The notes below the pieces were generated by a model. It had not been told where the DNA came from. It worked only from the letters and a program-made list of their open reading frames with translations, and ran no database searches. The translations under genes and the position numbers were made by a program. Shown in pieces: positions 4,731-49,192 of a stretch of 64,000 nt of DNA. Within the stretch, counting starts at the first letter, position 1. Every line of letters begins with the position of its first letter. Where the stretch lies: sequence record OQ427096.1. One strand, 5' to 3'.

Positions 4731-5084
4731 ATGAGTGCATCTAGCCAGATGCTGAAACTGTTGGCCAGTTTGCAGAACGAACTGGCCATGGTTGATGTTG
4801 ATCCTGAAATGGCTGAGTTTGCGGAACACGAAAAGATCCTTGATGTGTTCCGACAGACTGTAGCATCAATTGAACACATCTATCCTATGGTGCAGGCGGT
4901 CGAAGAAGTCCTCGACTGGTCTATCACTCCAGCTCTCTTCTATCACAAATGGAAGAGAGCGGCTGCTCACATGGGTGTCGATGACGACATTGGTGAAGAA
5001 GATATCGGTCCAGACGTTCGAGGACTACTCGATCGGTTTAGCGACGATAATGACGATGAAGAAGACGAAGGAGAAGAAAGTTGA
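4731..5084 (+). CDS. Hypothetical protein with acidic C-terminal tail
   Basis: Fills the gap between pol and uvsX; D/E-rich end. Confidence 0.7.
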   Translation: MSASSQMLKLLASLQNELAMVDVDPEMAEFAEHEKILDVFRQTVASIEHIYPMVQAVEEVLDWSITPALFYHKWKRAAAHMGVDDDIGEEDIGPDVRGLLDRFSDDNDDEEDEGEES

Positions 5085-6130
5085 GTTTGGTTGATAAATT
5101 GATGAAGCAGTCTACGATTAAAGAGACTGCATCGCTGGAGAATAGCACCTTCTTCCAGAAAAAAGAACTGGTGCAGACAAAGATTCCCGTCCTCAACCTT
5201 CTTCAGTCGGGTGAGCTTGATGGTGGTTTCGGTCCTGGTCTGACCATCTGGGCAGGTCCATCCAAGCACTTCAAGACCAGCTTTGTGCTGACGAACATGA
5301 AGGCGTTCCTTGACAAGTACAAGGATGGTGTGGTTCTGTTCTACGATTCGGAGTTCGGTACTCCTCAGAGTTACTTCTCGTCCTTCGGTATTCCGCTGGA
5401 TCGCGTTGTTCATACTCCGATTACCAACATCGAGGTGCTCAAGTTCGACCTGATGCAGCAGTTGGATGGTCTGAACCGTGGCGATAAGGTGTTCATCGCA
5501 ATTGACTCGGTTGGTAACCTGGCTTCCAAGAAGGAAGTGGAAGACGCCCTGGAAGGCAAGTCGGTTGCAGACATGACCCGCGCAAAGGCATTCAAGTCTC
5601 TGTTCCGTATGGTCACTCCGGTGCTGTCCCTTAAGGGTCTCTGTATGCACGTCGTGGCTCACACCTACGATACGATGGAGATGTATGCGAAGAAGGTCGT
5701 GTCCGGTGGTACAGGTCTTATCTACTCGGCAGACAACATCTATATCGTTGGTCGTCAGCAGAACAAGGATGGTCAGGAAGTCGTTGGTTACAACTTCGTT
5801 CTGAACGTTGAGAAGTCTCGCTATGTCCGAGAGAAGAGCAAGATTCCGGTCGAGGTAACATTCGAGAACGGTATTTCGCCTTGGTCTGGTCTGCTCGACC
5901 TTGCACTTGAAACAGGTCACGTTGTGAAGCCGTCCAACGGCTGGTATCAGCAGGCTGGCACTGAAAAGAAGCTCCGCCTTGCAGATACGAACAATGCTGC
6001 ATTCTGGGTTCCGATCCTTACCAAGACAGACTTTGGTGCAAAGCTCAAGGAACACTTCCAGCTTGCTCAGACTGAAATGATCAAGGCTGGAACGATCGAT
6101 TACGAAACTGGCGAAGTGATTGAAGAATAA
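5081..6130 (+). CDS. uvsX: RecA-like recombinase UvsX
   Basis: Walker A AGPSKHFKT, LFYDSEFG, IDSVGNLASKKE, VVSGGTG. Confidence 0.97.
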   Translation: MSLVDKLMKQSTIKETASLENSTFFQKKELVQTKIPVLNLLQSGELDGGFGPGLTIWAGPSKHFKTSFVLTNMKAFLDKYKDGVVLFYDSEFGTPQSYFSSFGIPLDRVVHTPITNIEVLKFDLMQQLDGLNRGDKVFIAIDSVGNLASKKEVEDALEGKSVADMTRAKAFKSLFRMVTPVLSLKGLCMHVVAHTYDTMEMYAKKVVSGGTGLIYSADNIYIVGRQQNKDGQEVVGYNFVLNVEKSRYVREKSKIPVEVTFENGISPWSGLLDLALETGHVVKPSNGWYQQAGTEKKLRLADTNNAAFWVPILTKTDFGAKLKEHFQLAQTEMIKAGTIDYETGEVIEE

Positions 6131-7404: not shown

Positions 7405-8088
7405 ATGCAGAAAGAAAAAACCAATCCAGAACTCGGTCAGCGCGTTCACAAGCACCTCGTCAGCCTCGGCATTGAAACGCCAATCACTGAGCTGGTGAAT
7501 GTCCCGAGCAAAGAGAAGATCGCGAAGATCGAAGAGTTCCAGCGCCAGTCGTTGCTCACTCTGGGTCTTGATCTGACCGACGACTCTCTGATCGAAACTC
7601 CGAAGCGCATCGCAAAGATGTACGTTGAGGAACTGTTCTACGGTCTGGATTACAACAACTTCCCGAAGTGCACAGAAGTTGATAACAAGATTGAATACGA
7701 TGAGATGGTGATTGAGCGTTGCTCGGTCAAGTCTGTCTGTGAACATCACCTCGTCTACTTTGGTACTGCTCACCGTCCCGATCTGTCTTGCTGGGTGTCT
7801 TACATGCCAGGTGAGAAGGTTCTGGGTCTGTCGAAGCTGTCACGCATCGTAGACTTCTTCAGCCGTCGTCCTCAGATTCAGGAACGCCTGACTGTGCAGA
7901 TTGCTGAGACCATCAAGTTCATCACTGGAACGGAAGATGTTGCCGTTGTGATGAAGGGTCAGCACTTCTGTGTTCTGACCCGTGGTGTTGAGGATTCCGA
8001 TGGCGTGACCATCACCTCTAGCCTGAGTGGTTCGTTCCGTACCGATCCTACGCTGCGATCGGAAATGATGTCTTTGATCAAGGGTTGA
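7405..8088 (+). CDS. folE: GTP cyclohydrolase I
   Basis: ETPKRIAKMY, SVCEHHL, GLSKLSRIV, RRPQIQERLT, HFCVLTRGV. Confidence 0.97.
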   Translation: MQKEKTNPELGQRVHKHLVSLGIETPITELVNVPSKEKIAKIEEFQRQSLLTLGLDLTDDSLIETPKRIAKMYVEELFYGLDYNNFPKCTEVDNKIEYDEMVIERCSVKSVCEHHLVYFGTAHRPDLSCWVSYMPGEKVLGLSKLSRIVDFFSRRPQIQERLTVQIAETIKFITGTEDVAVVMKGQHFCVLTRGVEDSDGVTITSSLSGSFRTDPTLRSEMMSLIKG

Positions 8089-8089
8089 T

Positions 8090-8623
8090 ATGAGCGAGCA
8101 CCTGAAAGAACTTGAAAGAGTAGCCATTGAAAGGCTGGTTGAGTACGGTGATCCTAAGGGTGTGTATGTTGCGACGAGCGGCGGAAAGGATTCTGTCGTC
8201 GTCCATCATCTAGCTCGAAAGGTGTTCGGTGATCAGGTTCATCTGATCCACACACCGAAGGTGACCGGCTTCAACAAGGTACATCCTGCGACTGTAGCAT
8301 TCCTCTATGAGCAGAGTGCGAAATATGGTCTCAACATCGTTCCATTTGAACGTATGCAGGAGTATCTGGATACCAACAAGCTTTGGATCCAAATTGACGG
8401 CACGCGCCGCTCCGAATTTGATCGGACTGACCGCAGTGCAGACGTCGTAGTGAATGGTAAGTTGATCAGCCGAGCGGACATGCCTGTTCATACGGTTGGC
8501 GGCTTGTTTGGCAATGAATCAATTTTCCCTATTGTGGATTGGAGTGATGATGATGTATGGGCATATATTGGACAGCAAGGTATTGAAGTCACCGAGGAAT
8601 ATCGTATTCTCGCCACACGTTGA
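8090..8623 (+). CDS. PAPS-reductase-like / adenine nucleotide alpha-hydrolase (PP-loop) protein
   Basis: SGGKDS PP-loop, DGTRRSE, PIVDWSDDDVWAYI. Confidence 0.85.
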   Translation: MSEHLKELERVAIERLVEYGDPKGVYVATSGGKDSVVVHHLARKVFGDQVHLIHTPKVTGFNKVHPATVAFLYEQSAKYGLNIVPFERMQEYLDTNKLWIQIDGTRRSEFDRTDRSADVVVNGKLISRADMPVHTVGGLFGNESIFPIVDWSDDDVWAYIGQQGIEVTEEYRILATR

Positions 8624-9278
8624 TGATGAAGTGATCGGGTGCTTTGAAGCACTTGATCGCGGTCTGATCACAGACGTTGTCTACTTCTACGATATCACCG
8701 AAGAGAGAAAGATCGAAGCTCTAAAAACTGCTGAGATGTTTGGCTTTACGCCGCATTTTGTCAGCCCTGATTGGTTTGGGCTTCCGAAAGAGATTGATAA
8801 CATCGCATCTGATGATACGATCTTCTGTCCGACCATTCGAGACTCACATTCTCAGCACGCTGAGATTAGCATCAGAGCCCGAATCATGCGCAGAAACACT
8901 GGCTGCAAGTTGGTGTTCTATACGGTAGACATGGATTCGTTCCAGGTACCGCTTCCTCCGAAGGTTCGAGCAAAGAAGAAGTCTGTCCTTCAGGAACTGT
9001 TCCCTTCGCAGAGTGTTTTGCTGACGAATGAGAAATATCATCTGTTCGAAGGCTATAGCGAGACTGATCACTATCAGGGAATCGAGTTCAGAATTGACGA
9101 TGAACGAAAGGTTGTGATGAAGGGTTATCACGTCCCTTCGGGCCTTGAAGCGCCTTGGGATGATTCAATTTCAGATTCTGAATACCTCAACATCCTGATC
9201 ACTCGATATTTCAACCGTAATTCGGTTAGTTACATCGCATTTCACAATGGCAATAGGTGGGTAGAATTTAATGGCTAA
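8553..9278 (+). CDS. PIG-L/MshB/LmbE-family deacetylase-like protein
   Basis: VFSPHVDDEVIG (HxDD) and DSHSQH metal motifs; GGAG RBS at 8541. Confidence 0.8.
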   Translation: MYGHILDSKVLKSPRNIVFSPHVDDEVIGCFEALDRGLITDVVYFYDITEERKIEALKTAEMFGFTPHFVSPDWFGLPKEIDNIASDDTIFCPTIRDSHSQHAEISIRARIMRRNTGCKLVFYTVDMDSFQVPLPPKVRAKKKSVLQELFPSQSVLLTNEKYHLFEGYSETDHYQGIEFRIDDERKVVMKGYHVPSGLEAPWDDSISDSEYLNILITRYFNRNSVSYIAFHNGNRWVEFNG

Positions 9279-9702
9279 GATTGGTATTGAAGTAGAAGGT
9301 ATGCTGCGAGGCGAGAACGTTCGCACTTATTTCTGTTCGGCTAGGGAATATGTTGATGCAGATCTTCTCAATCTCATCTACAATCTGTATGCGAACAACA
9401 TTGAGATGATCTACATTTCGGATCATCACAACGAGCTTGACCTGCATCACCTTGCAGGTGTGTTCGAAGACAGCGGTATCGGTGTTACTGTCGAATTGAC
9501 CGAGTTGACTTCTGTCCCGCCTGCAGGTGTTGAGATCTTCTGGAATGTTTCGCAGGCTTCTTATGCTCAGTCTCGTACTCTGCATTTCCTGCGTCCAACG
9601 GATCAGATCAAGATCGAGAATGAGAAACACGTTCTTGCATTCGTTGCAGGCAATGCGGTAATCACTTATCCTGAGGACTTTAATGGAGACATTGAAGTAT
9701 GA
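9271..9702 (+). CDS. Hypothetical protein in the DNA-modification cluster
   Basis: Overlap-coupled between the deacetylase and the glycosyltransferase. Confidence 0.7.
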   Translation: MAKIGIEVEGMLRGENVRTYFCSAREYVDADLLNLIYNLYANNIEMIYISDHHNELDLHHLAGVFEDSGIGVTVELTELTSVPPAGVEIFWNVSQASYAQSRTLHFLRPTDQIKIENEKHVLAFVAGNAVITYPEDFNGDIEV

Positions 9703-10859
9703 GTGAAGATTTCATGAGTGGTATGATCGACCAGATTCCGGAACAGGCAAAGCGAAATCTGTTCATCATTCCGATTGAGCCTCTGGAAGAACGATACACT
9801 GGCGAGTGGTACAAGTTCCTGCCGCCAGCATTTGCTAAGCACAATTTCAAGGTTACCCAGATTGATGGCGAGACTCTGACCGATTCGGTTGAGACTGGCG
9901 CATTCCTGGATATGAACTCGACTATCTTCTACAAGGCATCTCAGATGCAGAAGATTGCTCGTATGTTCCGTGAGAAGTCTGTGCCTCATGGTTCGGTCTT
10001 CTTTGTCAGTGACTTGGAATTCTGGGGCATTGAATCTCTGCGTCTGATGGCTCAGATCAATCAGGTCGAGATCAAGATCTATGGCTTCCTGCATGCGGCT
10101 TCGTACACCACTGAAGATGCTTTCGCAGTTGCGGCACCCTATCAGAAGTATACTGAGCTGGGCTGGCTGAAAGCTGTTGATGGCGTCTTTGTCGGTTCGC
10201 ACTATCACAAGAAGGCAGTGATGGAACGTCGTGTGAACGCGTTCGCGAATGAAGCTGACCGTCGTGAGATTGAGAAGAAGATCCACGTGAGTGGCAATCC
10301 ACTCTTCCCGAGCGCATATGACACGACTTCGGTTGGCCCGAAGAAGAACAAGATCGTGATCACCAATCGTTTCGATTCCGAGAAGCGCCCAGATCAGAGT
10401 TTGCTGGTTGCACTCCTTGTCAAGGAAGCACTGCCTGATACTGAGATTGTTCTGACGACCAGCCGCCCGACTTTCCGTTCAAATCAGAAGTGGTTGGTTG
10501 ACCTCGCTCGCATGTACGAGAAACAAGGTCTGATCACCATCAAGGAAGGACTGACCAAGAAAGAGTATCACGACGAGCTCAAGACTGCGAAGGTCATGAT
10601 CTCAAACTCTATCGAGGAAAACTTCGGTTACTGCATTGTAGAGGCTATCATGTATGACGTGGCGCCTGTACTGACTCGAGGTCTTTCGCACGTTGAAATT
10701 GTTCAGGGCTTTGACCAGTTCCTGTTCGACACCAACGACGAAGCAGTAAGTAAGGTTATCACATTCCTGCAACGCGATCAGCTTCTCAACGCGAAGCACT
10801 TCTTGGATTCTTACTTTATGGCTGCTGACTTCATGGGTCAGATCATGGCCCAAGGATGA
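9699..10859 (+). CDS. GT-B (GT4-like) glycosyltransferase
   Basis: IVITNRFDSEKRPD and EENFGYCIVEA donor-binding motifs. Confidence 0.88.
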   Translation: MSEDFMSGMIDQIPEQAKRNLFIIPIEPLEERYTGEWYKFLPPAFAKHNFKVTQIDGETLTDSVETGAFLDMNSTIFYKASQMQKIARMFREKSVPHGSVFFVSDLEFWGIESLRLMAQINQVEIKIYGFLHAASYTTEDAFAVAAPYQKYTELGWLKAVDGVFVGSHYHKKAVMERRVNAFANEADRREIEKKIHVSGNPLFPSAYDTTSVGPKKNKIVITNRFDSEKRPDQSLLVALLVKEALPDTEIVLTTSRPTFRSNQKWLVDLARMYEKQGLITIKEGLTKKEYHDELKTAKVMISNSIEENFGYCIVEAIMYDVAPVLTRGLSHVEIVQGFDQFLFDTNDEAVSKVITFLQRDQLLNAKHFLDSYFMAADFMGQIMAQG

Positions 10860-10860
10860 T

Positions 10861-12174
10861 ATGACAGATAACTACAACGGAAACGAACTCCACTACATCG
10901 CAAGCGGAACGTCTTTCATGTACATCAACTCACTCCGTCGAGATGGCGGAGTGAATGATGAAACGATTGATTGGGTACGCAACATGTTCGTAGGAGCAGA
11001 TCGTGGACCTAACAAATTCGGCATGCTGTTCAACGCGTTCACTGAATCGACCTTCGGTAAGGTGTTCAAGGAGAACTATGCTGACGTAATGTGCGACATT
11101 CACGCAGACTCAGGTGGTCTACAGATGGTGTCGCTTGGCAAGGTTGCTGATGATGCAGCTAAGCGCAAGATCTACAAGACTCAGGCTGATTACAGCACTG
11201 TGGCAATGTCGTTCGACGAAATCCCTGTCTCGCAGATCTTTGATCCGTATGCTGGACGTGGTGCAATGTCGGCGACGCGTAAGAAGGTCTTCGATCGCTC
11301 TCAGCTGAAAGCTAAGGCAATTGAATCAGGAAAGAATCTACGTGAACAGCTTGAATACTTTGCGGAAGTCGGGACGATCGCTAAGCCTATGCTTATTGCT
11401 CAAGGCAATTGTCCAGAGACCTATTATGACTGGGTTGAGTACGTCCAGGATCAGATCCCTCATGAGCTCATGGACAATATCGCAGGCGTTGCAGTCGCAA
11501 CCTCGACGCTTGGTCCTGGAGATCTAGAGAACTACGAATCGGCGTTTGTTGCTTCGCAGATGAATTTCCGTTTTGACTGCAAGCAAATCCACTTCCTGGG
11601 TGTTGGTTCGTTTGATCGTCTTGCTCCTGTTCTGGCACTAGCTAAGTCAGGCGTCTACAAGAACAAGATCATCAGCTACGACAGCACTACTCACACAGGT
11701 GGGCTTGCTCGTTCACGATTCTACACACGACGTCCTGACGGCACCTATGTTGGAACTCGTCTGTTGCAATCGGATGGATATCGCCCCCGTGATTATCAGT
11801 TCATGATGGATCACATTGGCAAGTTCAACATCGGCTTCGATGATCCGGAATCGCTCTACAAGTATTTCATCACTTGCCCGAGCTATTCTGCCGTTGAGGC
11901 AATTGGTGAGTCGCACAATCGACCATTCATTCCAAAGACAAAGATTGCTCTGTTCCGATATTCGTACGATAACTTCATCACACAGATTGAAGAGTACATG
12001 GATTCGGACGGATACATGAAGGGCATTCGTAAGGCGCACCAGCATCCTATCGCAGGTCTTGCTGAATGTCGCACTCGTTCCGACTTCAATGTCTGGCACT
12101 CGACGTTCAAGAACGTGTTGAAGTCGGACAGAGTTCGATCGAAGCAACAGAGCCTCGAAGAGCTTTTCGGTTAA
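10861..12174 (+). CDS. dpdA: TGT-fold DNA 7-deazaguanine transglycosylase (DpdA-like)
   Basis: HADSGGLQ, MSFDEIP, AQG, IHFLGVG, SYDST TGT motifs; located inside a folE/queD/queE cluster. Confidence 0.82.
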   Translation: MTDNYNGNELHYIASGTSFMYINSLRRDGGVNDETIDWVRNMFVGADRGPNKFGMLFNAFTESTFGKVFKENYADVMCDIHADSGGLQMVSLGKVADDAAKRKIYKTQADYSTVAMSFDEIPVSQIFDPYAGRGAMSATRKKVFDRSQLKAKAIESGKNLREQLEYFAEVGTIAKPMLIAQGNCPETYYDWVEYVQDQIPHELMDNIAGVAVATSTLGPGDLENYESAFVASQMNFRFDCKQIHFLGVGSFDRLAPVLALAKSGVYKNKIISYDSTTHTGGLARSRFYTRRPDGTYVGTRLLQSDGYRPRDYQFMMDHIGKFNIGFDDPESLYKYFITCPSYSAVEAIGESHNRPFIPKTKIALFRYSYDNFITQIEEYMDSDGYMKGIRKAHQHPIAGLAECRTRSDFNVWHSTFKNVLKSDRVRSKQQSLEELFG

Positions 12175-12178
12175 AGAC

Positions 12179-12217
12179 ATAGCATCCGTTGATTCACCGT
12201 CACGGATGCTATATCAT
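12179..12217 (+). promoter_or_regulatory. Sigma70-type promoter (TTGATT-N17-TATCAT) overlapped by an 11-bp inverted repeat
   Basis: ATAGCATCCGT (12179-89) / ACGGATGCTAT (12202-12); -35 at 12189-94, -10 at 12212-17; AGGAG RBS downstream. Confidence 0.55.
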
Positions 12218-12244
12218 AGTTGGACCATTTAGGAGAACCATTAG

Positions 12245-12616
12245 ATGAAAAAGATTTGGGTAACATTCCGGAAGGCAGGCTTTCACCGCTACCCAGCAGC
12301 CGGCACCCAAGGACTCGAAGACGTCGCGTACCTTGCACACCCTCACCGCCACCTGTTCCACTTCAAGGTAGCCATTGAGGTCTTCCATGACGATCGTGAG
12401 ATCGAGTTCCACCAGTTCCTCAACTTCTTGGAAGAGGCTGTTGCACTCAACGGTCTTGATTACAAGTCGTGTGAGATGATTGCAGATGATATTGCAAAGA
12501 TTGTTGCTTTGAAGTATCCTGCACTCTACCGAACCCTTGAGGTTGAAGTTTCGGAAGATGGCGAGTGCGGTGTTCATGCAATCTATGGCATCAGCAATGG
12601 CGAGGTATTCGGCTAA
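12245..12616 (+). CDS. queD: QueD-like 6-carboxytetrahydropterin synthase (T-fold)
   Basis: HPHRHLFHF, SCEMIA and VSEDGE T-fold motifs. Confidence 0.78.
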   Translation: MKKIWVTFRKAGFHRYPAAGTQGLEDVAYLAHPHRHLFHFKVAIEVFHDDREIEFHQFLNFLEEAVALNGLDYKSCEMIADDIAKIVALKYPALYRTLEVEVSEDGECGVHAIYGISNGEVFG

Positions 12617-13509
12617 TGGCACTGTTCGAAGTATCGGAAATCTTCAGCTCGTTGGAGGGTGAGGCACAATTCACCTTCCATCCGACCACCTACATTCGTT
12701 TTGCACGATGCAACTTCTCTTGTCCGTTGTTCAACAACCCTGAGAAGCTGATTGATGCAAAGGGCTACGCGCCTCTCGATTTCGATCCGAAGGACTATCA
12801 ACGTCTGGAAGATATTCCGCTGATTCACAAAGGCTGCGATAGTCAGTATGCAGTCAATCCGATCTTCGCGCACATGTGGAAGAAGTACGACACGGACGCA
12901 TTGATTGATGCTCTGTTCGAGGTTCTTCCTCAGGGTAAGCTCATCTACAGCACTGGTCTACCTCAGATCATCTCTTTGACTGGAGGTGAGCCTACTTTGA
13001 AGTGGAAGTTCATTCCGGAGATTCTGTTCCATCCTCGAATGAAAGATGCACGTCACTATCTTGTTGAGACGAACTGCTCTGTTCCGTTCAAGGACGAATT
13101 CATCAGCAACATCTACGAGTGGCTTGCACAAGACTCGCGCCGCATTTGGACATGGAGCAATTCTCCGAAGATCTCGTCCAGTGGTGAGGATCGTAAGCAA
13201 GCGATTCGCCCTGAGATTGCTCTTATGCAGCACGTTTTGACGCACAACTTCCCGGGGCGTGTCAATCAGTATTTCAAGTTCGTCGTTGATGGATCTGAGG
13301 CTGATTACGCTGAGGTGAAGGAAGTGATGGAAATCTACTACGCTGCTGGTCTGCCTCGAACTGTTCCGATCTGGATCATGCCTCAGGCTTGCACTGACGA
13401 ACAGCAGAAGGTCACCGCACGCGGAATTGCAAAGCGATGCATTGATGAAGGTTGGTTGTACTCGCACCGTGTGCAGAACGATCTCTGGGGCAATGGCGTT
13501 GGCACCTAA
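12616..13509 (+). CDS. queE: 7-carboxy-7-deazaguanine synthase (radical SAM)
   Basis: EIFSSLEGEA, RFARCNFSC...CD, SLTGGEP, VETN, SPK, KFVV, YSHRVQ; start at ATG 12616. Confidence 0.92.
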   Translation: MALFEVSEIFSSLEGEAQFTFHPTTYIRFARCNFSCPLFNNPEKLIDAKGYAPLDFDPKDYQRLEDIPLIHKGCDSQYAVNPIFAHMWKKYDTDALIDALFEVLPQGKLIYSTGLPQIISLTGGEPTLKWKFIPEILFHPRMKDARHYLVETNCSVPFKDEFISNIYEWLAQDSRRIWTWSNSPKISSSGEDRKQAIRPEIALMQHVLTHNFPGRVNQYFKFVVDGSEADYAEVKEVMEIYYAAGLPRTVPIWIMPQACTDEQQKVTARGIAKRCIDEGWLYSHRVQNDLWGNGVGT

Positions 13510-14181: not shown

Positions 14182-14585
14182 AACTATTTCGTAAGAGCTA
14201 TGATGGCGGCGGAGATTCCGGCGTCACAGGCTATTGGTTGATTGAGTGCAAGTCTTTGTTCTCAATCGTATTGCTTCACTTTGAAGGCAAGAGTCGCGAG
14301 GCATTCCATTCTCACGCATTCAATGCTCTGACTTGGTGGCTCAAGGGAGCCGTAACCGAGGAGATGAAGGATGGTCGAATCAGAACTTGGTGGCCTTCTT
14401 GGAAACCAAAGTGGACGCCGAAGAACTGCTTCCACAAGATTCATGCTGATCCTAAAGGCGCCTGGGCACTAAGCATTCGTGGTCCATGGGATGCAACCTG
14501 GTTTGAATCTAAGAACGGTGAAACCTATGAATTAGGTCATGGTCGTGTCAGAATTAATGGTCTAGTTGAGCAGGATTCCGAATGA
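14178..14585 (+). CDS. Cupin-fold protein
   Basis: AFHSHAF...VTEE...FHKI cupin metal motif; GGAGG RBS. Confidence 0.65.
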   Translation: MKLFRKSYDGGGDSGVTGYWLIECKSLFSIVLLHFEGKSREAFHSHAFNALTWWLKGAVTEEMKDGRIRTWWPSWKPKWTPKNCFHKIHADPKGAWALSIRGPWDATWFESKNGETYELGHGRVRINGLVEQDSE

Positions 14586-15985
14586 GTGAAGTAACAAATG
14601 AGCGCCTTGTTCTCTCGGCGCTGGTAAAGAATGAAGAGTATATGCGCAAGATTCTTCCCTTCGTAAAGGAAGAATACTTTGAGGACGAGTCGGAGAAGCG
14701 CGTCTTCAAGATGATCAATGCCTACGCGGGCAAGTACAATGAGATGCCCGACAAATCGACTCTGATGGTTGAGGCAAAGAATGATCGCAGTCTTGATGAA
14801 GGTCGTAGTGCTCGAGTAATTGAAACAGTCGCAGACGTTTTCAGCATCATCCCTAGCCAGAACTTCGATTGGTTGAAGCAGATCACGGAAACCTGGTGTC
14901 AGGAACGAGCAGTCTACAATGCTCTGCAGGAAGGCATCGCAGTCTATCAGGGTGAGAACACAAAGCTCTCGATTGCAGCGATTCCAGACATCCTTGCAAA
15001 GGCGATCAGTGTCACGTTCAACACACAGGTTGGTCAAGACTACTTCGATGACGCTCAGCTGCGATGGGACTTCTACACCAATCCTGAGTCGAAGGTTCCG
15101 TTCCGAATTGATACGTTCAATGAGATCACTTCGGGTGGTCTGACTCGCAAGACGCTGAACCTGTTCGTTGCAGGTACCAACGTTGGTAAGTCTCTGGCAC
15201 TGGTCAGCCTGGCTGCGGATTACATTCGCGATGGCCTGAACGTGCTCTATGTGTCTTGCGAAATGCGAGAGGAAGTTGTGTTCCAGCGAGTGGACGCGAA
15301 CATCCTCGGCATGGATATGAACAAGATCACTGACATTGGTCAGGAGAAGTTCCTCAATCGCATCGAGTCTCTGAAATCGAAGTCGTACGGCAAGCTGAAG
15401 GTCAAGGAGTTCCCACCGACCTCAGCATCAACGTTGAACATTCGACAGACGCTCGACGAACTGAAGATGAAGCAAAACTTCATCCCAGACGTAATCATTG
15501 TTGACTACCTGCAGATTCTCGCATCGTATCGTTTGGCTTATTCGGTTGGCTCCTACTACTTCTTCAAGTCGGTGGCAGAAGAGCTTCGTGCTCTGGCTGT
15601 TGAGACCAACACCGTTGTGTGGTCGGCTGCGCAGTTTAACCGTGGACAGATGAACGCGACGGACGTTGACATGAGCGGTATCGCAGAGTCGGCTGGTATC
15701 GCTCACACGGCTGACGGTATGTGGGCAATGATCAGAACGGATGAACTGGATCAGGTGAATCAGCTTTTGATCAAGCAGCTGAAATCTCGATATGCGAACA
15801 AGTCGATCAAGACCACGTTCACAATCGGTGTCAAGATCGAGCATCAGACACTCTATGGTCTGGACGATGACAGGTCAGGTGAGTTCACTCAAATGGACTC
15901 GAAGATTGTCACAGACCAGAACTCGCTGAAGGACAAGTTCCAAAGCGCCAATGGCGGAAGCAAATTCCAAGGATTTGAAGTGTGA
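14582..15985 (+). CDS. gp41: Replicative DNA helicase (T4 gp41-like)
   Basis: AGTNVGKS, YVSCEM, IIVDYLQI, AAQFNR, IAESAG, KSRY. Confidence 0.97.
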   Translation: MSEVTNERLVLSALVKNEEYMRKILPFVKEEYFEDESEKRVFKMINAYAGKYNEMPDKSTLMVEAKNDRSLDEGRSARVIETVADVFSIIPSQNFDWLKQITETWCQERAVYNALQEGIAVYQGENTKLSIAAIPDILAKAISVTFNTQVGQDYFDDAQLRWDFYTNPESKVPFRIDTFNEITSGGLTRKTLNLFVAGTNVGKSLALVSLAADYIRDGLNVLYVSCEMREEVVFQRVDANILGMDMNKITDIGQEKFLNRIESLKSKSYGKLKVKEFPPTSASTLNIRQTLDELKMKQNFIPDVIIVDYLQILASYRLAYSVGSYYFFKSVAEELRALAVETNTVVWSAAQFNRGQMNATDVDMSGIAESAGIAHTADGMWAMIRTDELDQVNQLLIKQLKSRYANKSIKTTFTIGVKIEHQTLYGLDDDRSGEFTQMDSKIVTDQNSLKDKFQSANGGSKFQGFEV

Positions 15986-33506: not shown

Positions 33507-36500
33507 ATGATCCTACAAGAGAACAGCTTTTATTCAGACCAATCTGGTCTCGCTACGTTGCTCACAAACAAGCAACTCGTAGCCGATATTTTCTATATCA
33601 ATTTCCTCGGGTTTGCTGGACTCCTTAAGATCAAGGACGCTCCTGCGCTGATGACCTATGTCAAGGGTTTGGGCAAGCTCCAGCTTTCCAACATGACAGA
33701 CACCAATGCTGATTGGAGCCTGGCTATCAAGCTGGCACATGATGCAGGTATCATCAATATGGTCGCTGCCAACATGGCAACGAAGTTCCTTGCACTGGTC
33801 AAGAGCGGAAAGATTCGCTCAGCTGACCTTAAGGACGATCCAATCCGAGATATCATCAAGGCTTGCCGTGTAATCAGCAACAAGCCTTCACCCCGTATCT
33901 ATCAGGCTGTTCAAGACTTTGTTGATGCAAAGGACCAGCTAGAGACGACAACCGTCAAGCTCTGGAAGCTGTCTGCACGTCCAGAGCTAATGACCGCGGC
34001 TAAGGAATTCCGTGAACAGATCACCCTGGGTGGTTATTCGTCCGCATTCCTGAAACACCAGTGGGCAAATGGAACTGCAACGACGCCTGCTCCAGCTGTA
34101 GCTGTTCAGCAGCCACCAGCAAAGGGCCAGCGTGGTTCGTTGCCACCTCAGGGTGCTGCACATGGTTCCGACTCGGATTACATGGCTGCTCTGCTTCATG
34201 TGTTCAAGCTCAAGGGTGGTATTCATAGCTACCTCGAACGTTTCGGCTTCAAGGGACACTTTGACGTTGATCGCTTCAAGAAGGCTGTCGCATCTCCTGA
34301 GTTCGTTCTGTCTCATGGCTATCACGTGCCTTGGGAGCAGCATCCGTTTGTCCAATGGATTCGTAAAAAGGATCCGTCGGCTTCGGCAGCTGTGCTCAAG
34401 ATCCTCAATGATAAGGATCGTCAGACAGGTGCAATCGCTGTAGCAACTCAGGTATCGAATACTGCACCTCAGGCACCTAAGCCAGCTGCTGTAATCCAGA
34501 CTGTCGTTGCAAATCGCCAAGAGCCGATTGTGACTAATGAGTCTATCTCTGAGATGTACCTCAACGGTTTTGATCCTAAGCTTCATGCGTTGATGATGAA
34601 GTATCATTGGCCTAAGGGCGAAGAAGCGAACATCATCAAGTCGAATCTTCCTAAGGTTCTGAGCGCCCTCAAGACATTCGAGGTTGATGAGCTTAAGAAG
34701 CCTCATGGTCGAATTGAACAGAGCGAATATACGCAGAGCACCTTTGCGCGTATGCTTCTTGGTAACGGCGTGATGCCATCCCAGATCAACGGACCTATCT
34801 ACAACACTCTGTTGAAGTCGGGCGAGAGAAAGGACGCTGATGCTGTATTCAATCTTCTGATCGATTACAACAACGCATCCACTTTGAAGCAGAACGCGTT
34901 TGGTGGCGACTTCGGTAATGACCCAGTTACGACTGCGGTGTCCCGCCTGTTTGATGGTGATGGTGTTGATTTCATTCTTGATCACCTGACACAGATCAAC
35001 AGCGTAGGATTCCAGCCAATCGTCTATGATGCAGGTAAGCATCTTTGGATCGGAAACGATGCCGAAACAGAGATGAACCGTAACCTGATCCAATGCTTGA
35101 TGTTGCCTACGTCAACCCTGGACGGAATTGTTCGCAACATCGAGGCAACGTTTGCTCGTCTTGATATCAGAACTGGTCGAACCATCGGAAAGAACCTTGC
35201 AGTTGACAAGGAATCCTTCGATAACAAGGCGTCTGCAAAGGTCAAGAAGCTCGTCGATGCAGTGAATAAGGAAGGTTACGTTGATATTTCCCTGAAGAAA
35301 TTCGAAGGTGATACGATGGAGATCCTCGACCTCCTGACAGTAGCTAAGAAGGTCACGCAGGGTGCTTCCTATGCAATGTCTGATCACTTTGTTTCTCTGT
35401 TGGGCGATGCAATGGCTGGCAAGTTTGATATCACGCCAGTGATCAAGGACGAGGAAGACCTGTTCCTTATCTTCAAGGCATTGCAGCAAGCAGCATTCTA
35501 CATGAATGCAACATCCCGTGCTACGGCTGGAACTATCATGCCTTGGCTGTATGAGAAGATGGCAGCTGTTGGATCTTTGAACTGGAAGATGAACAGAGCG
35601 CCTAACCCATATGGTGAGTATCCTTTCCCACAGGCTACTAACTATTTCAAGTATCTGCTCGAAAAGGGACACACCACAGCGGCACGCCATGTTGCTCCAT
35701 GGATGATCTACTACGGAACAGGTAGCGATATCTTCAAGATGATCATTGCGCAGTTCCCTGAGCTGAAGGAAGAAGTCTTCAAGCGTTCTGGACAGATCGG
35801 TCATGGCGGTACGACATTTGCTGCGATTCTTGATCAAAAGTTTGATCCTGTTGCTATGCCTTATATCAGCCTCGACGCGCTGACCTCATTTGTTCGTTCG
35901 ATTGCAATGCACGGATCAATTGAAGATGCTGTCAAGGCTGCACGCTGGGCAAGAGCAAAGATCATGAAGGAACAACCTGATCGTAGGCCTTGGGAACAAG
36001 CTGGTCCTTCTATGGTAGGTCTTCTGGGAACTGCATGGTTCGTTGAGCCAAGCGATCCTCACTATGATGAAGCGCTCAAGGTGGCTTCAAAGTGGCTGAT
36101 CTCTACTCTCAAGCAACAATATAGCGAAAGTGACATCAAACTGTTCCAAGCCTACAACCCAGAGTTCTGGAAGGTATGGATTTCAGAAAAGAAGAAGGGC
36201 GCTGAGAATAGTCCTCACGCTACAACCTCACTCCGTGGTATGATGGACACTTCTGAGTATTCGGAACTCTACATCAACTGCCTGAAAGGCCAGGGTCTAA
36301 ATGCAATCAAGGCAAACCTGATTGATTCGACCACAGGTTGGGCTGCTCAGTTGATGCAGGTTGCGGATTCGGATGACATTACGATTGACGCCAAGAAGGA
36401 GCTTGTTCGTAGATTCGCTCCTGCGATGGAAGTCAACGGCGTTCACACCATCCGAGATAAGTCGCACCGTGACTCGCTCAACAAGAACTTTGCTGATGTT

Positions 36501-37694
36501 CTGCTCGACGTCTATGACTCGGATAAGGACCTTGCAGACAAAATCTTTGCTGACCTGCCTCGAACCACTCGTACTCTGATCGTAAAGATGCAGGGTGAGA
36601 TGGCTTACATCGAAGCAATCAAGGACGACCTCTACAAGCATCCTATCAAGCCTGACTTCCCGCTTGACCATGCCCGTATTCGTACGATCTTGAAGTACAA
36701 CAACCTGGCTATCCGAGTCACGTCTAATCGAAACATCGTTCAGACCATCGGTGATATTGATTCGGCAGCTAAGTCTTCGATCAGCAAGGCTCTTGTGGAC
36801 CTCAAGGTCTCCGAAGTGAAACAGGATGAGACGGCGCTTGAACTCGAGACAATTCGTCTCAATAAGTTCCGAAACAACAAGCACGGCGAAGTTGCATTCA
36901 AGGTTCTCAAATCGTTTGACGTTGCATTCCCAGGCGCAAGCAAGAGAATTGCTGAATTCCGAAAGAACAATCCTCAGGATGGTACGCTTGATCCTGTGTT
37001 CCACGGAACAGGTACAATTGCCGCTTCGATGGTTCTGCGTAACGGATTCCAGATCATTCCTGCAAACGACTCCTCAGCTGTTGGTCGTATGCTTGGTAAC
37101 GGTATCTACTTCTCCAATGTCATCGACAAGGCACAGCAGTACGTCGGCGACAAGGGTGGTGGCATCACGCGTAGCTATGGTACACGTGGTTACATCTTCG
37201 AGATGGAAGCCGAACTAGGAAAGAACCCTAAGGACTATCGTTCCGCTGGTCTCGGTCGCGACTCTATCCGTTCTCCGGAATGGGCAGTGTTTGATCCGGA
37301 CAATCAGCTTCGCATCTACAAGGCATACTACATTGAGCTTGTAAGCCTCAATGCGGTTAAGGCGATGGCTGCAAAGCACAACACCAAGTTGAACGAAGCG
37401 GTAGGTAGCTCATTTGAAGATTACATGATGGAGAAAACTGTGGATACAAAGGCAACATCGAAGTTCTGGTTCATGGGCGATTCGTTGCCCAAGTCGATGA
37501 CGGAAACTTGCGAAGTCAGCGAGTTCAAGTCGAAGCGAAACGTCTACACAGAACCATCGTGGGACGGCGGTACGATCGTTTCTATCGAACATTCGCTAGA
37601 CATTGAGCCGGTAACGATTTCGATTGATGACACGGCGAAGTGGTTGTTCAACAAGCCAGATGAAGCAAAGTTGTTCTTCGATCTGATGAACTGA
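33507..37694 (+). CDS. Large Alt-like protein with a C-terminal PARP-type (H-Y-E) ADP-ribosyltransferase domain
   Basis: VFHGTG, GRMLGNGIYFS, AQQY, SPEWAVF. Confidence 0.82.
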   Translation: MILQENSFYSDQSGLATLLTNKQLVADIFYINFLGFAGLLKIKDAPALMTYVKGLGKLQLSNMTDTNADWSLAIKLAHDAGIINMVAANMATKFLALVKSGKIRSADLKDDPIRDIIKACRVISNKPSPRIYQAVQDFVDAKDQLETTTVKLWKLSARPELMTAAKEFREQITLGGYSSAFLKHQWANGTATTPAPAVAVQQPPAKGQRGSLPPQGAAHGSDSDYMAALLHVFKLKGGIHSYLERFGFKGHFDVDRFKKAVASPEFVLSHGYHVPWEQHPFVQWIRKKDPSASAAVLKILNDKDRQTGAIAVATQVSNTAPQAPKPAAVIQTVVANRQEPIVTNESISEMYLNGFDPKLHALMMKYHWPKGEEANIIKSNLPKVLSALKTFEVDELKKPHGRIEQSEYTQSTFARMLLGNGVMPSQINGPIYNTLLKSGERKDADAVFNLLIDYNNASTLKQNAFGGDFGNDPVTTAVSRLFDGDGVDFILDHLTQINSVGFQPIVYDAGKHLWIGNDAETEMNRNLIQCLMLPTSTLDGIVRNIEATFARLDIRTGRTIGKNLAVDKESFDNKASAKVKKLVDAVNKEGYVDISLKKFEGDTMEILDLLTVAKKVTQGASYAMSDHFVSLLGDAMAGKFDITPVIKDEEDLFLIFKALQQAAFYMNATSRATAGTIMPWLYEKMAAVGSLNWKMNRAPNPYGEYPFPQATNYFKYLLEKGHTTAARHVAPWMIYYGTGSDIFKMIIAQFPELKEEVFKRSGQIGHGGTTFAAILDQKFDPVAMPYISLDALTSFVRSIAMHGSIEDAVKAARWARAKIMKEQPDRRPWEQAGPSMVGLLGTAWFVEPSDPHYDEALKVASKWLISTLKQQYSESDIKLFQAYNPEFWKVWISEKKKGAENSPHATTSLRGMMDTSEYSELYINCLKGQGLNAIKANLIDSTTGWAAQLMQVADSDDITIDAKKELVRRFAPAMEVNGVHTIRDKSHRDSLNKNFADVLLDVYDSDKDLADKIFADLPRTTRTLIVKMQGEMAYIEAIKDDLYKHPIKPDFPLDHARIRTILKYNNLAIRVTSNRNIVQTIGDIDSAAKSSISKALVDLKVSEVKQDETALELETIRLNKFRNNKHGEVAFKVLKSFDVAFPGASKRIAEFRKNNPQDGTLDPVFHGTGTIAASMVLRNGFQIIPANDSSAVGRMLGNGIYFSNVIDKAQQYVGDKGGGITRSYGTRGYIFEMEAELGKNPKDYRSAGLGRDSIRSPEWAVFDPDNQLRIYKAYYIELVSLNAVKAMAAKHNTKLNEAVGSSFEDYMMEKTVDTKATSKFWFMGDSLPKSMTETCEVSEFKSKRNVYTEPSWDGGTIVSIEHSLDIEPVTISIDDTAKWLFNKPDEAKLFFDLMN

Positions 37695-44878: not shown

Positions 44879-45709
44879 ATGACTCTCGTCCCTGTAAACC
44901 CGAACGAACTGGAAATGTCGGTTCGGATGTTCAAGCACATGTTCCGAAGGAAGGATCCGTATCAGAAGATTCTTACCCTGAAGAACTACTTCTTGAACTG
45001 GAACATCAAGAAGGTTGTAATGGGCGTCTCGGGCGGCGTTGATTCGGCACTGGTTCTCTTCCTCCTGGCTCATATCCCGGAAGTTGAAGTCCATGCAGTG
45101 ACGATCGATTTCGACACCTACAGCGATGTCTTTGACCAGGGCTATATCGAGCTCTTGCAGCTGGCTACAACTCGTTTCCGAAACGTGAAGTGGCACAAGA
45201 AAGATCTGACTCTGGCTTTCAGCGAGATGATGGTCGCCCTGGACCTCGAGAAAAGTTCTGATGAAGTCTTCGCCAACACCAGCTATGCGATGCGTTACCT
45301 GGGCTTCTTCGCCTACGCTCAAGCACTCGGCGGCGTGACCATCGGCACCACCAACCTGGATGAAATGGGCTACGTGGGCTGGTTCGGGAAGAACTCGGAT
45401 ATGATGGTCGACATCCAGCCGATTTCGACCCTGCACAAGTTCGAAGTAATCGAGTGGGCAAGGCTGTTGGGCGTACCTGAGCGTGTTGCTGCCCGCGTTC
45501 CGACAGGTGACTTGGTCAACGGTACCAGTGATGAAGAAAACTTCGGCTGCACCTATGACGAACTTTCTTTCTACACGCACCACCGTCTCAAAGACCCGGA
45601 CATGGAAATTTCGCCCTTCATGGAAGCGCATTTCGAAGGTGTAGAAAGGTTGCGAAAGAAAAATCTGCACAAATACCAGGGCCAGAAGTTCAACCCAGTC
45701 TTCCTGTAA
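44879..45709 (+). CDS. nadE: NH3-dependent NAD synthetase-like protein
   Basis: MGVSGGVDSA, GTTNLDE...GWFGK, PISTLHKFEV, PTGDL...TSDE...G.TYDEL, NLHK. Confidence 0.9.
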   Translation: MTLVPVNPNELEMSVRMFKHMFRRKDPYQKILTLKNYFLNWNIKKVVMGVSGGVDSALVLFLLAHIPEVEVHAVTIDFDTYSDVFDQGYIELLQLATTRFRNVKWHKKDLTLAFSEMMVALDLEKSSDEVFANTSYAMRYLGFFAYAQALGGVTIGTTNLDEMGYVGWFGKNSDMMVDIQPISTLHKFEVIEWARLLGVPERVAARVPTGDLVNGTSDEENFGCTYDELSFYTHHRLKDPDMEISPFMEAHFEGVERLRKKNLHKYQGQKFNPVFL

Positions 45710-45761
45710 AGAAAGATTTCTCCTGTATTATTTGTAGAACATAAACCGAACTGAGGTTCAG

Positions 45762-46904
45762 ATGGAAATCGCGCTCTGGCTCTGCTTGATCCCGATCACG
45801 TGGGCGGCAATAGCACATTTCGCATTCAAAAGGACGATCACCTGGAAAGAAGGTCTGCTCCAGGGCGGCGGCATCGCACTCGTGGTTCTTCTGATCTACG
45901 GCTGCATGGCATACAGCAATACCGCCGATCACGAAATCCTCAACGGACAGGTGACGGGAAAGAAGCAGACCTGGACCAGCTGTTCGCACTCGTATTCGTG
46001 TAACTGCTACACGACTTGCAGTGGCACAGGTTCAAGTCGATCCTGCACCCGACATTGCAGCACATGCTACGAGCACTCCAACGACTGGGATTGGGACGTC
46101 TTCACGACGGTAGGTAACATCGAGATCGATCGCGTTGACCGTCGTGGTAGCCGTGAACCACCTCGTTGGACTGCGGTACAGATCGGTGAACATGCTGCGG
46201 TGACGCACACCTACACCAACTATGTCAAGGCAGCTCCGAGCAGCTTGTTCAACGTCAAGCTGGCGGAAACCGAGGCAAAGTCCAAGGCTGCGATAATCCC
46301 TCAGTACCCACGCATCTACGACTACTATCGCGTTGACCACACCATTGATATCCAGGCAGGTGTCGCGAACAGAAAAGCCTGGGATGCAGAGCTGGACGAA
46401 GTCCTGAAAACTATGGGTTCGGCGCGACAAGTGAACGTCGTGTTGGTCTTCGTAGGCAAGCAAGGTCGGGAGTACAAAGACACGTTGGAGCGTGCTTGGC
46501 TCGGCGGCAAGAAGAATGATGTGGTGATTGTGGCAGGCGTCACAGGCACCAAGATCGACTGGGTTGAAGCCTTCACGTTTGGCAAGTCCTCCGGTAACGG
46601 AATGCTCGCCGTCAAGATGCGCGACGAGTTGCAGAAGTACGGTACCACTGAAAATGCGAAGGAAGGCGTGGCTGTAATCACAAAGGTGATCGCATCCGAC
46701 TTCCATCGTAAGAACATGAAAGACTACGAATACCTGAAGGCTGAGGGTGGACCTTCGGCAAAGCAAGTTTCCTGGCTGGTTGGTATTGTCCTGGTCCTCT
46801 TGATGGTGACAACTTTCCTTCTTCACAAGTACGACGTGTTCAACGAGGAGTTCTACGACAGGCACCCGAACATTCGCTACATCCGAAATAGTTTTCGTCG
46901 TTAA
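45762..46904 (+). CDS. Membrane protein with a Cys-rich loop and TPM-like periplasmic domain
   Basis: Two N-terminal TMs, CSHSYSCNCYTTC...CTRHCSTC, GGKKNDVVIV, C-terminal TM. Confidence 0.7.
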   Translation: MEIALWLCLIPITWAAIAHFAFKRTITWKEGLLQGGGIALVVLLIYGCMAYSNTADHEILNGQVTGKKQTWTSCSHSYSCNCYTTCSGTGSSRSCTRHCSTCYEHSNDWDWDVFTTVGNIEIDRVDRRGSREPPRWTAVQIGEHAAVTHTYTNYVKAAPSSLFNVKLAETEAKSKAAIIPQYPRIYDYYRVDHTIDIQAGVANRKAWDAELDEVLKTMGSARQVNVVLVFVGKQGREYKDTLERAWLGGKKNDVVIVAGVTGTKIDWVEAFTFGKSSGNGMLAVKMRDELQKYGTTENAKEGVAVITKVIASDFHRKNMKDYEYLKAEGGPSAKQVSWLVGIVLVLLMVTTFLLHKYDVFNEEFYDRHPNIRYIRNSFRR

Positions 46905-46934
46905 TCCAAAATCACATAAACCCAACAAAGGTAA

Positions 46935-47534: not shown

Positions 47535-47553
47535 TAAGTAGAAGTATCCGACG

Positions 47554-47572
47554 AGGCGCTCCAGCGCCTTTT
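47554..47572 (+). terminator. Intrinsic terminator followed by promoter TTGATA-N16-TATAAT (47576-47603)
   Basis: AGGCGCT-CC-AGCGCCT-TTT. Confidence 0.55.
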
Positions 47573-47626
47573 CGGTTGATACGAAACCATACATCGTTAT
47601 AATCAGCAAAAGAAAGGAGTTTTCTT

Positions 47627-48676: not shown

Positions 48677-48685
48677 GGAATTATC

Positions 48686-49144: not shown

Positions 49145-49192
49145 GGCACACTGTTAGACTATAATCACACCAAACGTAGAAAGGAGTTTTCT

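Follow-up and report, generated by a model that had tools for sequence, protein, structure and literature searches.

Why would a T4-like phage keep a glycosyltransferase, a PP-loop enzyme, a metal-dependent hydrolase and an orphan protein in the same run of genes as the enzymes that make 7-deazaguanines and insert them into DNA? The question is raised by a 6.1-kb block of Xanthomonas phage X1 (OQ427096.1, record positions 69405-75509, 100% identity), a 200-kb T4-like myovirus whose host is X. campestris pv. campestris 8004; the block is 89.5% identical to its counterpart in Xanthomonas phage BUDD. We analyzed a 64,000-nucleotide stretch of this record, hereafter the window, and give window positions, that is, record positions minus 62000, unless a record position is stated. 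The block spans positions 7405-13509 and holds eight genes, all on the plus strand, in the order FolE, PP-loop enzyme, PIG-L/LmbE-fold hydrolase, 143-residue orphan, GT4-like glycosyltransferase, DpdA, DpdL and QueE. All members of the compact eight-gene block that an earlier reading of the sequence had described (hereafter the original prediction) are present in this place and orientation, and the flanking genes, uvsX (5081-6130) and a gp41-type helicase (14582-15985), bear out the location that it had given. Our answer, to which we would grant an even chance of being right, is that the operon swaps guanine in DNA for a sugar-bearing, most likely amino-sugar-bearing, 7-deazaguanine that would shield the phage from host nucleases.

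We consider a sugar-decorated deazaguanine the best reading of this locus because the glycosyltransferase is syntenic with deazaguanine genes, because the neighboring genes form an ordered cassette, and because PIG-L-type hydrolases occur fused to DpdL. At least 596 contigs in IMG/VR encode DpdL and 397 encode an X1-like DpdA; we sampled the 80 best loci seeded with each of the two proteins. Sixty-six DpdA-seeded loci contain both DpdL and the glycosyltransferase, two contain DpdL only, none the glycosyltransferase only, and 12 neither. QueC is found in 4 of these 80 loci, never with DpdL or the glycosyltransferase. When at least 6 kb is available on both flanks, both genes are present in 27 of 28 loci, the remaining one having QueC and neither gene. 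The usual order, QueE-FolE-DpdA-DpdL-GT-QueD (GT, glycosyltransferase), places the glycosyltransferase between two deazaguanine genes. The DpdL-seeded loci belong to another T4-like group, in which the genes lie beside a family B polymerase and the transglycosylase is another, DpdA3-like TGT relative of 512 residues (hhalign against the DpdA profile, E 2.7e-5). The glycosyltransferase is present there in 69 of 80 loci (33/36 with full flanks), at a median distance from DpdL of about 200 bp.

Altogether, about 135 of the 160 viral contigs sampled encode both DpdL and the glycosyltransferase, marine and freshwater T4-like phages and PA5oct jumbo phages among them. In a tree of 74 DpdA sequences, the pair extends over deep branches, and the QueC state has at least four separate origins, always in the absence of both genes. 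The pattern holds over two transglycosylase types and several phage families. Among named phages, ACP17, BUCT-ZZ01, Phosso, BCSR5 and the PA5oct group have adjacent genes for DpdL and the glycosyltransferase, by tblastn and hidden Markov model (HMM) searches. A further point in favor is that PA5oct DNA is resistant to restriction enzymes whose sites contain G. In one class of phage deazaguanine operons, the glycosyltransferase is a built-in member with conserved synteny. The original prediction was to fall if the glycosyltransferase and deacetylase did not co-occur with dpdA in related phages; this check comes out clearly in its favor, the glycosyltransferase being syntenic with deazaguanine genes and the hydrolase belonging to a conserved cassette.

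This cassette is built of the PP-loop gene, the hydrolase gene (alone or fused), an orphan gene for 130-145 residues and the glycosyltransferase gene. We found it in this order in loci L012-L015, L017, L019, L021, L022 and L024-L029, as well as in BCSR5, a Burkholderia phage. In L020 all four genes are present, but the PP-loop gene is downstream on the opposite strand. Overall, the cassette is seen in about 17 further loci. DpdL lies within 10 kb in 14 of 16 metagenomic cassette loci, and in several of these FolE, QueD, QueE and DpdA belong to the same gene run. Of the 38 database relatives of the hydrolase, none carries an annotation, and nine metagenomic ones are hydrolase::DpdL fusions with the DpdL domain at the C terminus.

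In DpdL loci without the hydrolase, sugar-nucleotide genes of another kind are often found, namely an NAD-dependent NDP-sugar (nucleoside diphosphate sugar) epimerase/dehydratase (35/80) and a DegT-type sugar aminotransferase (20/80). Two different routes would thus point to an amino sugar, the X1 type using de-N-acetylation and the other type transamination. A phosphoribosyltransferase is found in 27 of the 80 DpdL loci and a GMP-reductase/IMPDH-like (IMP dehydrogenase-like) gene in 12, and PA5oct has epimerase-like and phosphoribosyltransferase-like genes between DpdL and QueE. The presence of the phosphoribosyltransferase and GMP-reductase/IMPDH-like genes near FolE, QueE and the DpdA3-like gene resembles nucleotide-level deazapurine metabolism, with a logic like that of toyocamycin or tubercidin, and hints at pre-replicative incorporation in this group. 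A further protein of 243 residues is encoded beside the DpdA3-like genes in 67 of 80 DpdL loci. Its PA5oct counterpart, EST35_0314 (L112, 4290-5036), is annotated as a virion structural protein and was detected by electrospray ionization tandem mass spectrometry (ESI-MS/MS); this protein may be packaged and connected with the modification module, or simply syntenic.

Which of the X1 genes belong to deazaguanine synthesis proper? The gene at 12245-12616 had been described as queD-like. It does encode a QueD/PTPS-fold paralog, but not QueD itself: its motif, L30-AHP-H34-R-H36-L-F38, is the LxxxHRHxF that marks DpdL, whereas CxxxHGH marks QueD (Cui et al. 2023, PMC10516641). We rejected this gene as the QueD of the phage because the motif has no catalytic Cys and because a separate, canonical QueD is encoded at record 172197-172703, outside the window and about 98 kb away. 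ACP17, BUCT-ZZ01 and L015 likewise have a canonical QueD besides DpdL. The X1 protein matches PHROG 17812 (4e-32) and shares 60% identity with the protein to which PMC10516641 gives the name dpdL in ACP17; the Pfam PTPS model does not match it and matches two of eight relatives weakly. The gene set that goes with DpdL (FolE, QueD, QueE and DpdA, with no QueC) is found across the X1 genome.

DpdL is a proposed CDG (7-carboxy-7-deazaguanine) decarboxylase that would produce 7-deazaguanine (PMC10516641). CDG as the end base, which followed from taking the gene for queD, is therefore no longer to be assumed, and with it would go the obvious attachment point for a sugar. When dpdL and dpdA from phage phiST or ACP17 were expressed in E. 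coli, no 2'-deoxy-7-deazaguanine (dDG) was obtained, and the authors suggest that further enzymes may be needed (PMC10516641). A glycosyltransferase gene and a gene resembling that of the X1 orphan adjoin dpdL in ACP17; the lack of such partner genes is the explanation we offer for the failed reconstitution.

FolE, GTP cyclohydrolase I (7405-8088), is responsible for the first step from GTP to 7-deazaguanines. Its family membership is unambiguous from sequence, with full-length matches over curated cut-offs in Pfam (PF01227, 1.1e-51, 175 bits against a cut-off of 27) and NCBIfam (equivalog NF006824, 248 bits against 202), a PHROG 2197 match at 2e-60, and 67% identity to FolE of Stenotrophomonas phage Moby. 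QueE, the radical-SAM CDG synthase (12616-13509), matches PHROG 2076 (2e-48) and is 72% identical to the annotated QueE of Moby. Its score is below the NCBIfam QueE equivalog cut-offs (best TIGR03963, 30 bits against 260). Three Cys residues, C32, C36 and C74, are kept in seven homologs and correspond to a radical-SAM CxxxCxxC motif split by some 35-37 residues; the X1-type insertion is also present in Moby, BUCT-ZZ01 and pf16, and the motif is uninterrupted in ACP17. The original prediction had noted that queC, queF and gat-queC were missing from the window. This holds, and extends to the whole 200-kb X1 genome, where we found no homolog of queC, queF or gat(-queC), so that there is no preQ0, preQ1 or archaeosine route.

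DpdA (10861-12174), a TGT-superfamily DNA-guanine transglycosylase of 437 residues, is nearest to the DpdA2 type. It was identified by a PHROG 10773 match (1.7e-87) and by hhalign alignment of a nine-member profile to E. coli Tgt (83.7% probability, E 8e-6), in which D83, D119 and D274 align with Tgt D89, D143 and D264. The corresponding motifs, DSGGLQ, FDEIP and YDS (DSGGFQ, FDEC and FDC in Tgt), are invariant in nine homologs. The X1 protein matches no Pfam model, and none of nine DpdA family members matches the Pfam TGT model PF01702, even at E <= 10; phage DpdAs are detectable only by profile-profile methods (PMC10516641). Homologs retrieved by tblastn are from KVP40-like vibriophages (27% identity to KVP40, E 7e-38), Moby, pf16 and ACP17, and the Schizotequatrovirus and ACP17 proteins are named DpdA in the literature. 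The DpdA2 of vibriophages inserts deazaguanines into DNA, and every DpdA-carrying phage tested so far has modified DNA. By analogy to these DpdA2 relatives, we infer that X1 DpdA acts on DNA.

In Moby, the same slot between uvsX and gp41 (L002, 3660-9074) encodes FolE, inositol-3-phosphate synthase, a 123-residue protein with a DIDGV HAD-phosphatase motif, a QueC-like protein, DpdA and QueE, and no canonical QueD is found in the 15 kb examined. QueC thus stands in place of DpdL and the glycosyltransferase, and the Moby genes may represent a different, inositol-related finishing module acting on a deazaguanine. DpdA is only 33% identical between X1 and Moby, against 67% and 72% for FolE and QueE; the transglycosylase has diverged far more than these enzymes between phages with different finishing modules.

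The GT4-like glycosyltransferase, of GT-B fold (9699-10859), was recognized by the Pfam model Glycos_transf_1 (8e-12, 45.5 bits, cut-off 26.4) and by an EX7E motif, E-NFGYCIV-E, which aligns with E-GFGLTVT-E of the trehalose synthase TreT. It is 42-55% identical to the cassette glycosyltransferases of L012-L017, and its similarity to those of the DpdL loci is clear from profile comparison (hhalign, 1e-43). The original prediction had likened the glycosyltransferase and hydrolase to MshA/MshB and BshA/BshB. The analogy stands at the level of fold, but no further: an NCBIfam scan of the two proteins gave no MshA, MshB, BshA or BshB model among the matches.

The hydrolase, or 'PHVDDE' protein (8583-9278), is a putative de-N-acetylase or amidase of the PIG-L/LmbE fold, identified through its family profile and a structure model. 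Its GenBank start, GTG 8631 (WEM34304.1, and likewise in the BUDD ortholog), cuts away the sequence IVFSPHVDDE and with it the metal-binding motif PHVDDE. The frame is open from 8496, and the segment from an upstream run of three Met codons to past the motif translates identically in X1 and BUDD. Metagenomic homologs start with MKSPRNIVFSPHVDDE, which corresponds to TTG 8583 in X1; ATG 8547-8553 is an alternative start. From TTG 8583, the hydrolase gene overlaps the PP-loop gene by 41 nt, equal to the overlap in L014 and within the 29-41 nt seen in L014, L015 and L017. Judging from these alignments, TTG 8583 and not the annotated GTG is most likely the true start. A frameshift joining the hydrolase and PP-loop genes was also considered and rejected, as overlapping starts are the rule in homologous loci and no frameshift is required.

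No Pfam model, PF02585 included, matches the X1 hydrolase itself, and single-sequence phmmer searches of the PDB returned no match for the hydrolase, DpdA or DpdL. The PIG-L model PF02585 matches 25 of 28 aligned family members, however, at best with 3e-5. Across these 28 sequences, D97, H99 and H102 never vary and PHVDDE hardly does, which fits the (A/P)H-x-DD and D-x-HP-x-H signatures. The best PDB match of the family profile is the LmbE protein TT1542, co-linear over both metal motifs at a non-significant E of 0.33. An AlphaFold2 model (pLDDT 92) compared by Foldseek with BFVD retrieved viral LmbE/GlcNAc-PI deacetylase models at E 2e-7 to 2e-4, among them the LmbE-like H6SUJ6 of Campylobacter virus IBB35, second-best at 2e-7, and a mimivirus GlcNAc-PI deacetylase (2e-5, TM 0.64). 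IBB35 is, we assume, a CP220-like phage, of a group reported to carry dADG, the 2'-deoxynucleoside of 7-amido-7-deazaguanine, and to lack QueC. From the family matches to PF02585, the TT1542 motif alignment and the model matches in BFVD, which agree with the PIG-L-type deacetylase first proposed, we accept the protein as a predicted divergent PIG-L/LmbE-fold zinc hydrolase with its catalytic residues intact.

The PP-loop gene (8090-8623) encodes an ATP-pyrophosphatase-type enzyme with the PAPS-reductase family fold, as anticipated (Pfam PAPS_reduct, 1e-13; SGGKDS motif). In 11 homologs, SGGKDS is invariant and no Cys is conserved; the protein ends shortly past a DW-D-VW motif and lacks the reductase C terminus. 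We rejected its assignment as a CysH/CysD sulfur gene given the missing conserved Cys and scores far under the cut-offs of the CysH/CysD NCBIfam equivalogs (best 40 bits against 154-413). The invariant SGGKDS together with the lack of conserved Cys argues for an ATP pyrophosphatase that adenylates a substrate, probably a carboxylate or carbonyl, and not for a reductase or sulfurtransferase.

The fourth cassette member, a 143-residue protein that we call hyp143 (9271-9702), is a true orphan family, in keeping with its first description as an unknown open reading frame. It is always located between the hydrolase and the glycosyltransferase, and its invariant residues are mostly acidic. It matches nothing in Pfam, PHROG or the PDB (7- and 39-sequence profiles against the PDB; Pfam scan of 39 members). 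Its AlphaFold2 model is of low confidence (pLDDT 67) and gave no functional clue in Foldseek. An HMM scan of 1.84 billion proteins yielded 410 family clusters at 50% identity; the 150 with the best scores are stand-alone proteins of 120-234 residues with no known domain, and no informative fusion is among them. A weak relationship (hhalign E 8e-4) links hyp143 to a 174-residue protein that ACP17 and 62 of 80 DpdL loci encode.

How tightly are the eight genes organized? Neighboring genes overlap by 4-41 nt or are separated by gaps of 1-2 nt, with the exception of 70 nt before the seventh gene, DpdL, and those that overlap are translationally coupled. A promoter and terminator scan gave nothing above chance. 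The position had been compared to that of the T4 beta-glucosyltransferase gene. It is indeed near uvsX, but the T4 order, 43-imm-42-bgt-segA-uvsX-40-41, puts beta-gt on the other side of uvsX.

What the analysis establishes is the identity of the genes as to fold and motif, their arrangement in an operon, their co-occurrence and the fusions. Put together, these suggest the following pathway. FolE, QueE and the QueD encoded elsewhere would convert GTP to CDG, through activities that are established for the families and that we assign here from homology. DpdL, a T-fold QueD paralog with a zinc site, would then process CDG, the published proposal being decarboxylation to 7-deazaguanine. DpdA, in which both catalytic Asp residues are kept, would exchange guanine in DNA for the deazaguanine, as its DpdA2 relatives suggest. 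The glycosyltransferase may transfer a hexose or N-acetylhexosamine from an NDP-sugar onto the deazaguanine, either as a free base or in DNA. In the X1 subtype, fold and motifs suggest that the hydrolase would strip the N-acetyl group and expose an amine, and that the PP-loop enzyme would use ATP to adenylate a carboxylate or carbonyl for ligation or amidation. The orphan protein would be an obligatory partner. The hypermodification first proposed is thus partly supported: it keeps its core, a glycosylated deazaguanine, for which the genomic coupling is strong and which is the best reading, but CDG can no longer be taken as the end base, and the likeness to MshA and MshB is one of fold.

Several points weigh against a sugar-bearing deazaguanine in X1 DNA. 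The proposal is drawn from the comparison of genomes and sequences, and the donor sugar specificity of the glycosyltransferase is not readable from its sequence. The Fisher test for the co-occurrence of DpdL and the glycosyltransferase in the DpdA-seeded loci gives p = 1.5e-12, a value that overstates independence, because the loci are best matches and phylogenetically related, and that is indicative only. Foldseek comparison of the hydrolase model with the PDB retrieved only generic Rossmann-like methyltransferases and dehydrogenases, at TM of about 0.3, and no PIG-L protein. Three loci of one lineage, L017, L024 and L025, have the cassette but no DpdA, DpdL or FolE within 10 kb. The link between cassette and deazaguanine may not be a strict one; in these loci the cassette may act on a different base, or the contig may have its deazaguanine genes elsewhere. 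In L017 (9505-13294), the glycosyltransferase gene is directly followed by genes for a SLOG-like protein and a sugar O-methyltransferase of rhamnosyl type, the latter of which speaks for a sugar and not against it. Cellulophaga phage phiST, in which dDG replaces all G (PMC10516641), and its relatives have DpdL and, by tblastn and HMM searches, no glycosyltransferase; the plain dDG of phiST means that DpdL does not require one. Finally, plain 7-deazaguanine, if that is what DpdL makes, would offer the glycosyltransferase no hydroxyl, amine or carboxyl at C7. An unusual linkage would then be needed; a C-glycoside (perhaps made with release of CO2), an acyl glycoside on CDG and a bond elsewhere on the base are all conceivable. 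As a side observation, the polymerase of the L017-type phage is a PolA-UDG fusion.

Two more specific chemistries can be considered within the sugar-bearing reading. An amide of CDG to glucosamine, formed in a mycothiol-like manner with the PP-loop enzyme in the part of QueC, is conceivable by analogy. The DpdL-glycosyltransferase pair may instead make a C7 C-glycoside, for example by decarboxylative attack of the electron-rich pyrrole carbon of CDG on a sugar donor, with the X1 subtype trimming the product to a cationic aminosugar and adding an ATP-dependent amide; we regard this as a long shot. If true, it would be the first C-glycosylated nucleobase in any DNA, and a widespread one, since the pair occurs in most of the sampled contigs.

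If the sugar is doubted, the base may be plain dDG, as in phiST and in Vibrio phage VP1, whose DNA is fully dDG-substituted, with the glycosyltransferase, hydrolase, PP-loop enzyme and orphan as passengers concerned with envelope sugars or sulfur. GT4 enzymes commonly act on envelope glycans. The precursor and insertion genes of X1 are the published dDG-type set, FolE, QueD, QueE, DpdL and DpdA without QueC (PMC10516641), and phiST shares with X1 the precursor genes, the DpdL motif, the lack of QueC and a transglycosylase of TGT fold, and makes its dDG without any glycosyltransferase. Its locus differs, however, in having no PP-loop enzyme, PIG-L-like hydrolase or hyp143 either, and in its transglycosylase, of the short DpdA3 type (259 residues) where that of X1 is DpdA2-like. 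The X1 genome paper (PMC13384950), which makes no mention of deazaguanines, lists cysD/cysH (sulfur metabolism) and gumH, wcaC, tagE and tarM (envelope) as auxiliary metabolic genes, names that are not tied to open reading frames and that would suit passengers. If they mean the genes at 8090-8623 and 9699-10859, we argue that context and motifs place both in a DNA-modification pathway. Passenger genes are also hard to reconcile with a glycosyltransferase that is located within the operon, in many cases with DpdL on one side and QueD on the other, and whose gain and loss go together with those of DpdL, with the existence of hydrolase::DpdL fusions, with a PP-loop protein devoid of conserved Cys and of a reductase C terminus, and with the translational coupling of overlapping neighbors in X1. 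We therefore hold plain dDG to be unlikely.

The sugar could also be a transient handle, a glycosylated or glycosyl-ester CDG intermediate that DpdL or the hydrolase would resolve to leave an unglycosylated final base, dDG or an amide; such a handle might drive decarboxylation or present the base to DpdA, with the orphan possibly aiding the glycosyltransferase. The fusion of DpdL to a hydrolase domain in several phages is what this scheme would lead one to expect, and the PP-loop enzyme, like QueC, could activate the carboxylate of CDG. The failure of dpdL and dpdA alone to give dDG in E. coli (PMC10516641) would fit as well. So would the modification of PA5oct DNA at G, a DNA that withstands restriction enzymes whose sites contain G and is a target of nucleases sensing modified G. 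Nevertheless, the dehydratase, aminotransferase and O-methyltransferase of related loci would have little point for a discarded group, and phiST reaches dDG with no glycosyltransferase at all, which leaves the transient handle improbable in our view. Highly improbable is a role in RNA, in which the TGT-fold enzyme would act on phage or host tRNAs and the glycosyltransferase would yield a glycosylated queuosine-like nucleoside. Mannosyl- and galactosyl-queuosine occur in eukaryotic tRNA, the transglycosylase is a TGT relative, and the many tRNA genes of X1 include Asn, Asp, His and Tyr, the queuosine-accepting set. Yet the nearest characterized relatives, the vibriophage DpdA2 enzymes, modify DNA, as do the DpdA phages tested to date without exception; the operon sits among replication genes from uvsX to the gp41 helicase; and the Pfam TGT model is unmatched.

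Known systems resemble the proposed sugar-bearing deazaguanine pathway in part. The KVP40-like vibriophages nt-1, VH7D and 6E35.1a share with X1 a T4-like genome and a homologous DpdA beside FolE, and DNA is the demonstrated target of that family; their DpdA2 systems yield 2'-deoxy-preQ0 (dPreQ0), 2'-deoxy-preQ1 (dPreQ1), its methylated form (mdPreQ1) and 2'-deoxyarchaeosine (dG+). Unlike X1, they use QueC, QueF, Gat or ArcS and have neither DpdL nor the glycosyltransferase. Closer in this respect are Acidovorax phage ACP17, Synechococcus phage BUCT-ZZ01, Pseudomonas phage PA5oct and Sinorhizobium phage Phosso, in which DpdL adjoins a homologous GT4-like glycosyltransferase in a deazaguanine cluster, but the PP-loop and PIG-L-like genes are absent; PA5oct has instead the epimerase-like and phosphoribosyltransferase-like genes and a DpdA3-like transglycosylase. 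The glucosyl-hydroxymethylcytosine of T4 offers a precedent for a phage glycosyltransferase that acts on a non-canonical base, as a means of escaping nucleases, and is encoded beside uvsX among replication genes. The T4 base is C and not G, however, its hydroxymethyl acceptor is made at the nucleotide level, and the T4 alpha- and beta-glucosyltransferases are unrelated to the X1 enzyme, the T4 models being unmatched in our Pfam scan. Mycothiol and bacillithiol synthesis brings together, like the X1 cassette, a GT4 enzyme, a zinc hydrolase of PIG-L fold and an adenylating enzyme that uses ATP (MshA/BshA, MshB/BshB and MshC), and its logic would suggest the addition of an N-acetylhexosamine, deacetylation and acylation of the amine. 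This is an analogy only. MshC is a Cys-tRNA-synthetase-like ligase and not a PP-loop enzyme, and a thiol is made instead of a nucleobase.

Has such a base been described before? To our knowledge, eight 7-deazaguanine derivatives are known in viral DNA, none of them sugar-bearing. A full-text literature search retrieved no report of a glycosylated deazaguanine in DNA, in line with the view that this hypermodification has not been characterized, although the glycosyltransferase itself may have been noticed earlier. Two recent papers on phage DNA glycosyltransferases do not mention deazaguanine, PAPS, PIG-L or LmbE. What is new here is that the glycosyltransferase is a regular partner of DpdL, in deazaguanine systems that are widespread.

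Three other regions of the X1 window may be recorded. A 4.2-kb gene at about 33507-37694 (record 95507-99694) is annotated as an ADP-ribosyltransferase. Farther on, at about 44879-52374 (record 106879-114374), is an annotated NAD+ salvage set of NAD synthase, NMN adenylyltransferase and nicotinamide phosphoribosyltransferase genes. Next comes a second glycosyltransferase gene (51058-52374), unrelated to the first.

These results have consequences for the understanding of phage DNA modification. DpdL, the least understood enzyme of the deazaguanine pathways, now has a regular partner gene, and a four-gene add-on, together with its fused variant, is now defined for enzymology. The sulfur and exopolysaccharide interpretation of X1 auxiliary metabolic genes is corrected, if those names refer to genes of the operon. 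The base can be sought in culturable phages, namely X1, BUDD, BCSR5, ACP17, BUCT-ZZ01, Phosso and phages like PA5oct. If G carries a bulky or cationic sugar, this would matter for the evasion of restriction and CRISPR, for type IV nucleases and for glycosylases that sense modified G; it would also affect how such phages are sequenced, and how Xanthomonas and PA5oct-like phages are employed in therapy and biocontrol.

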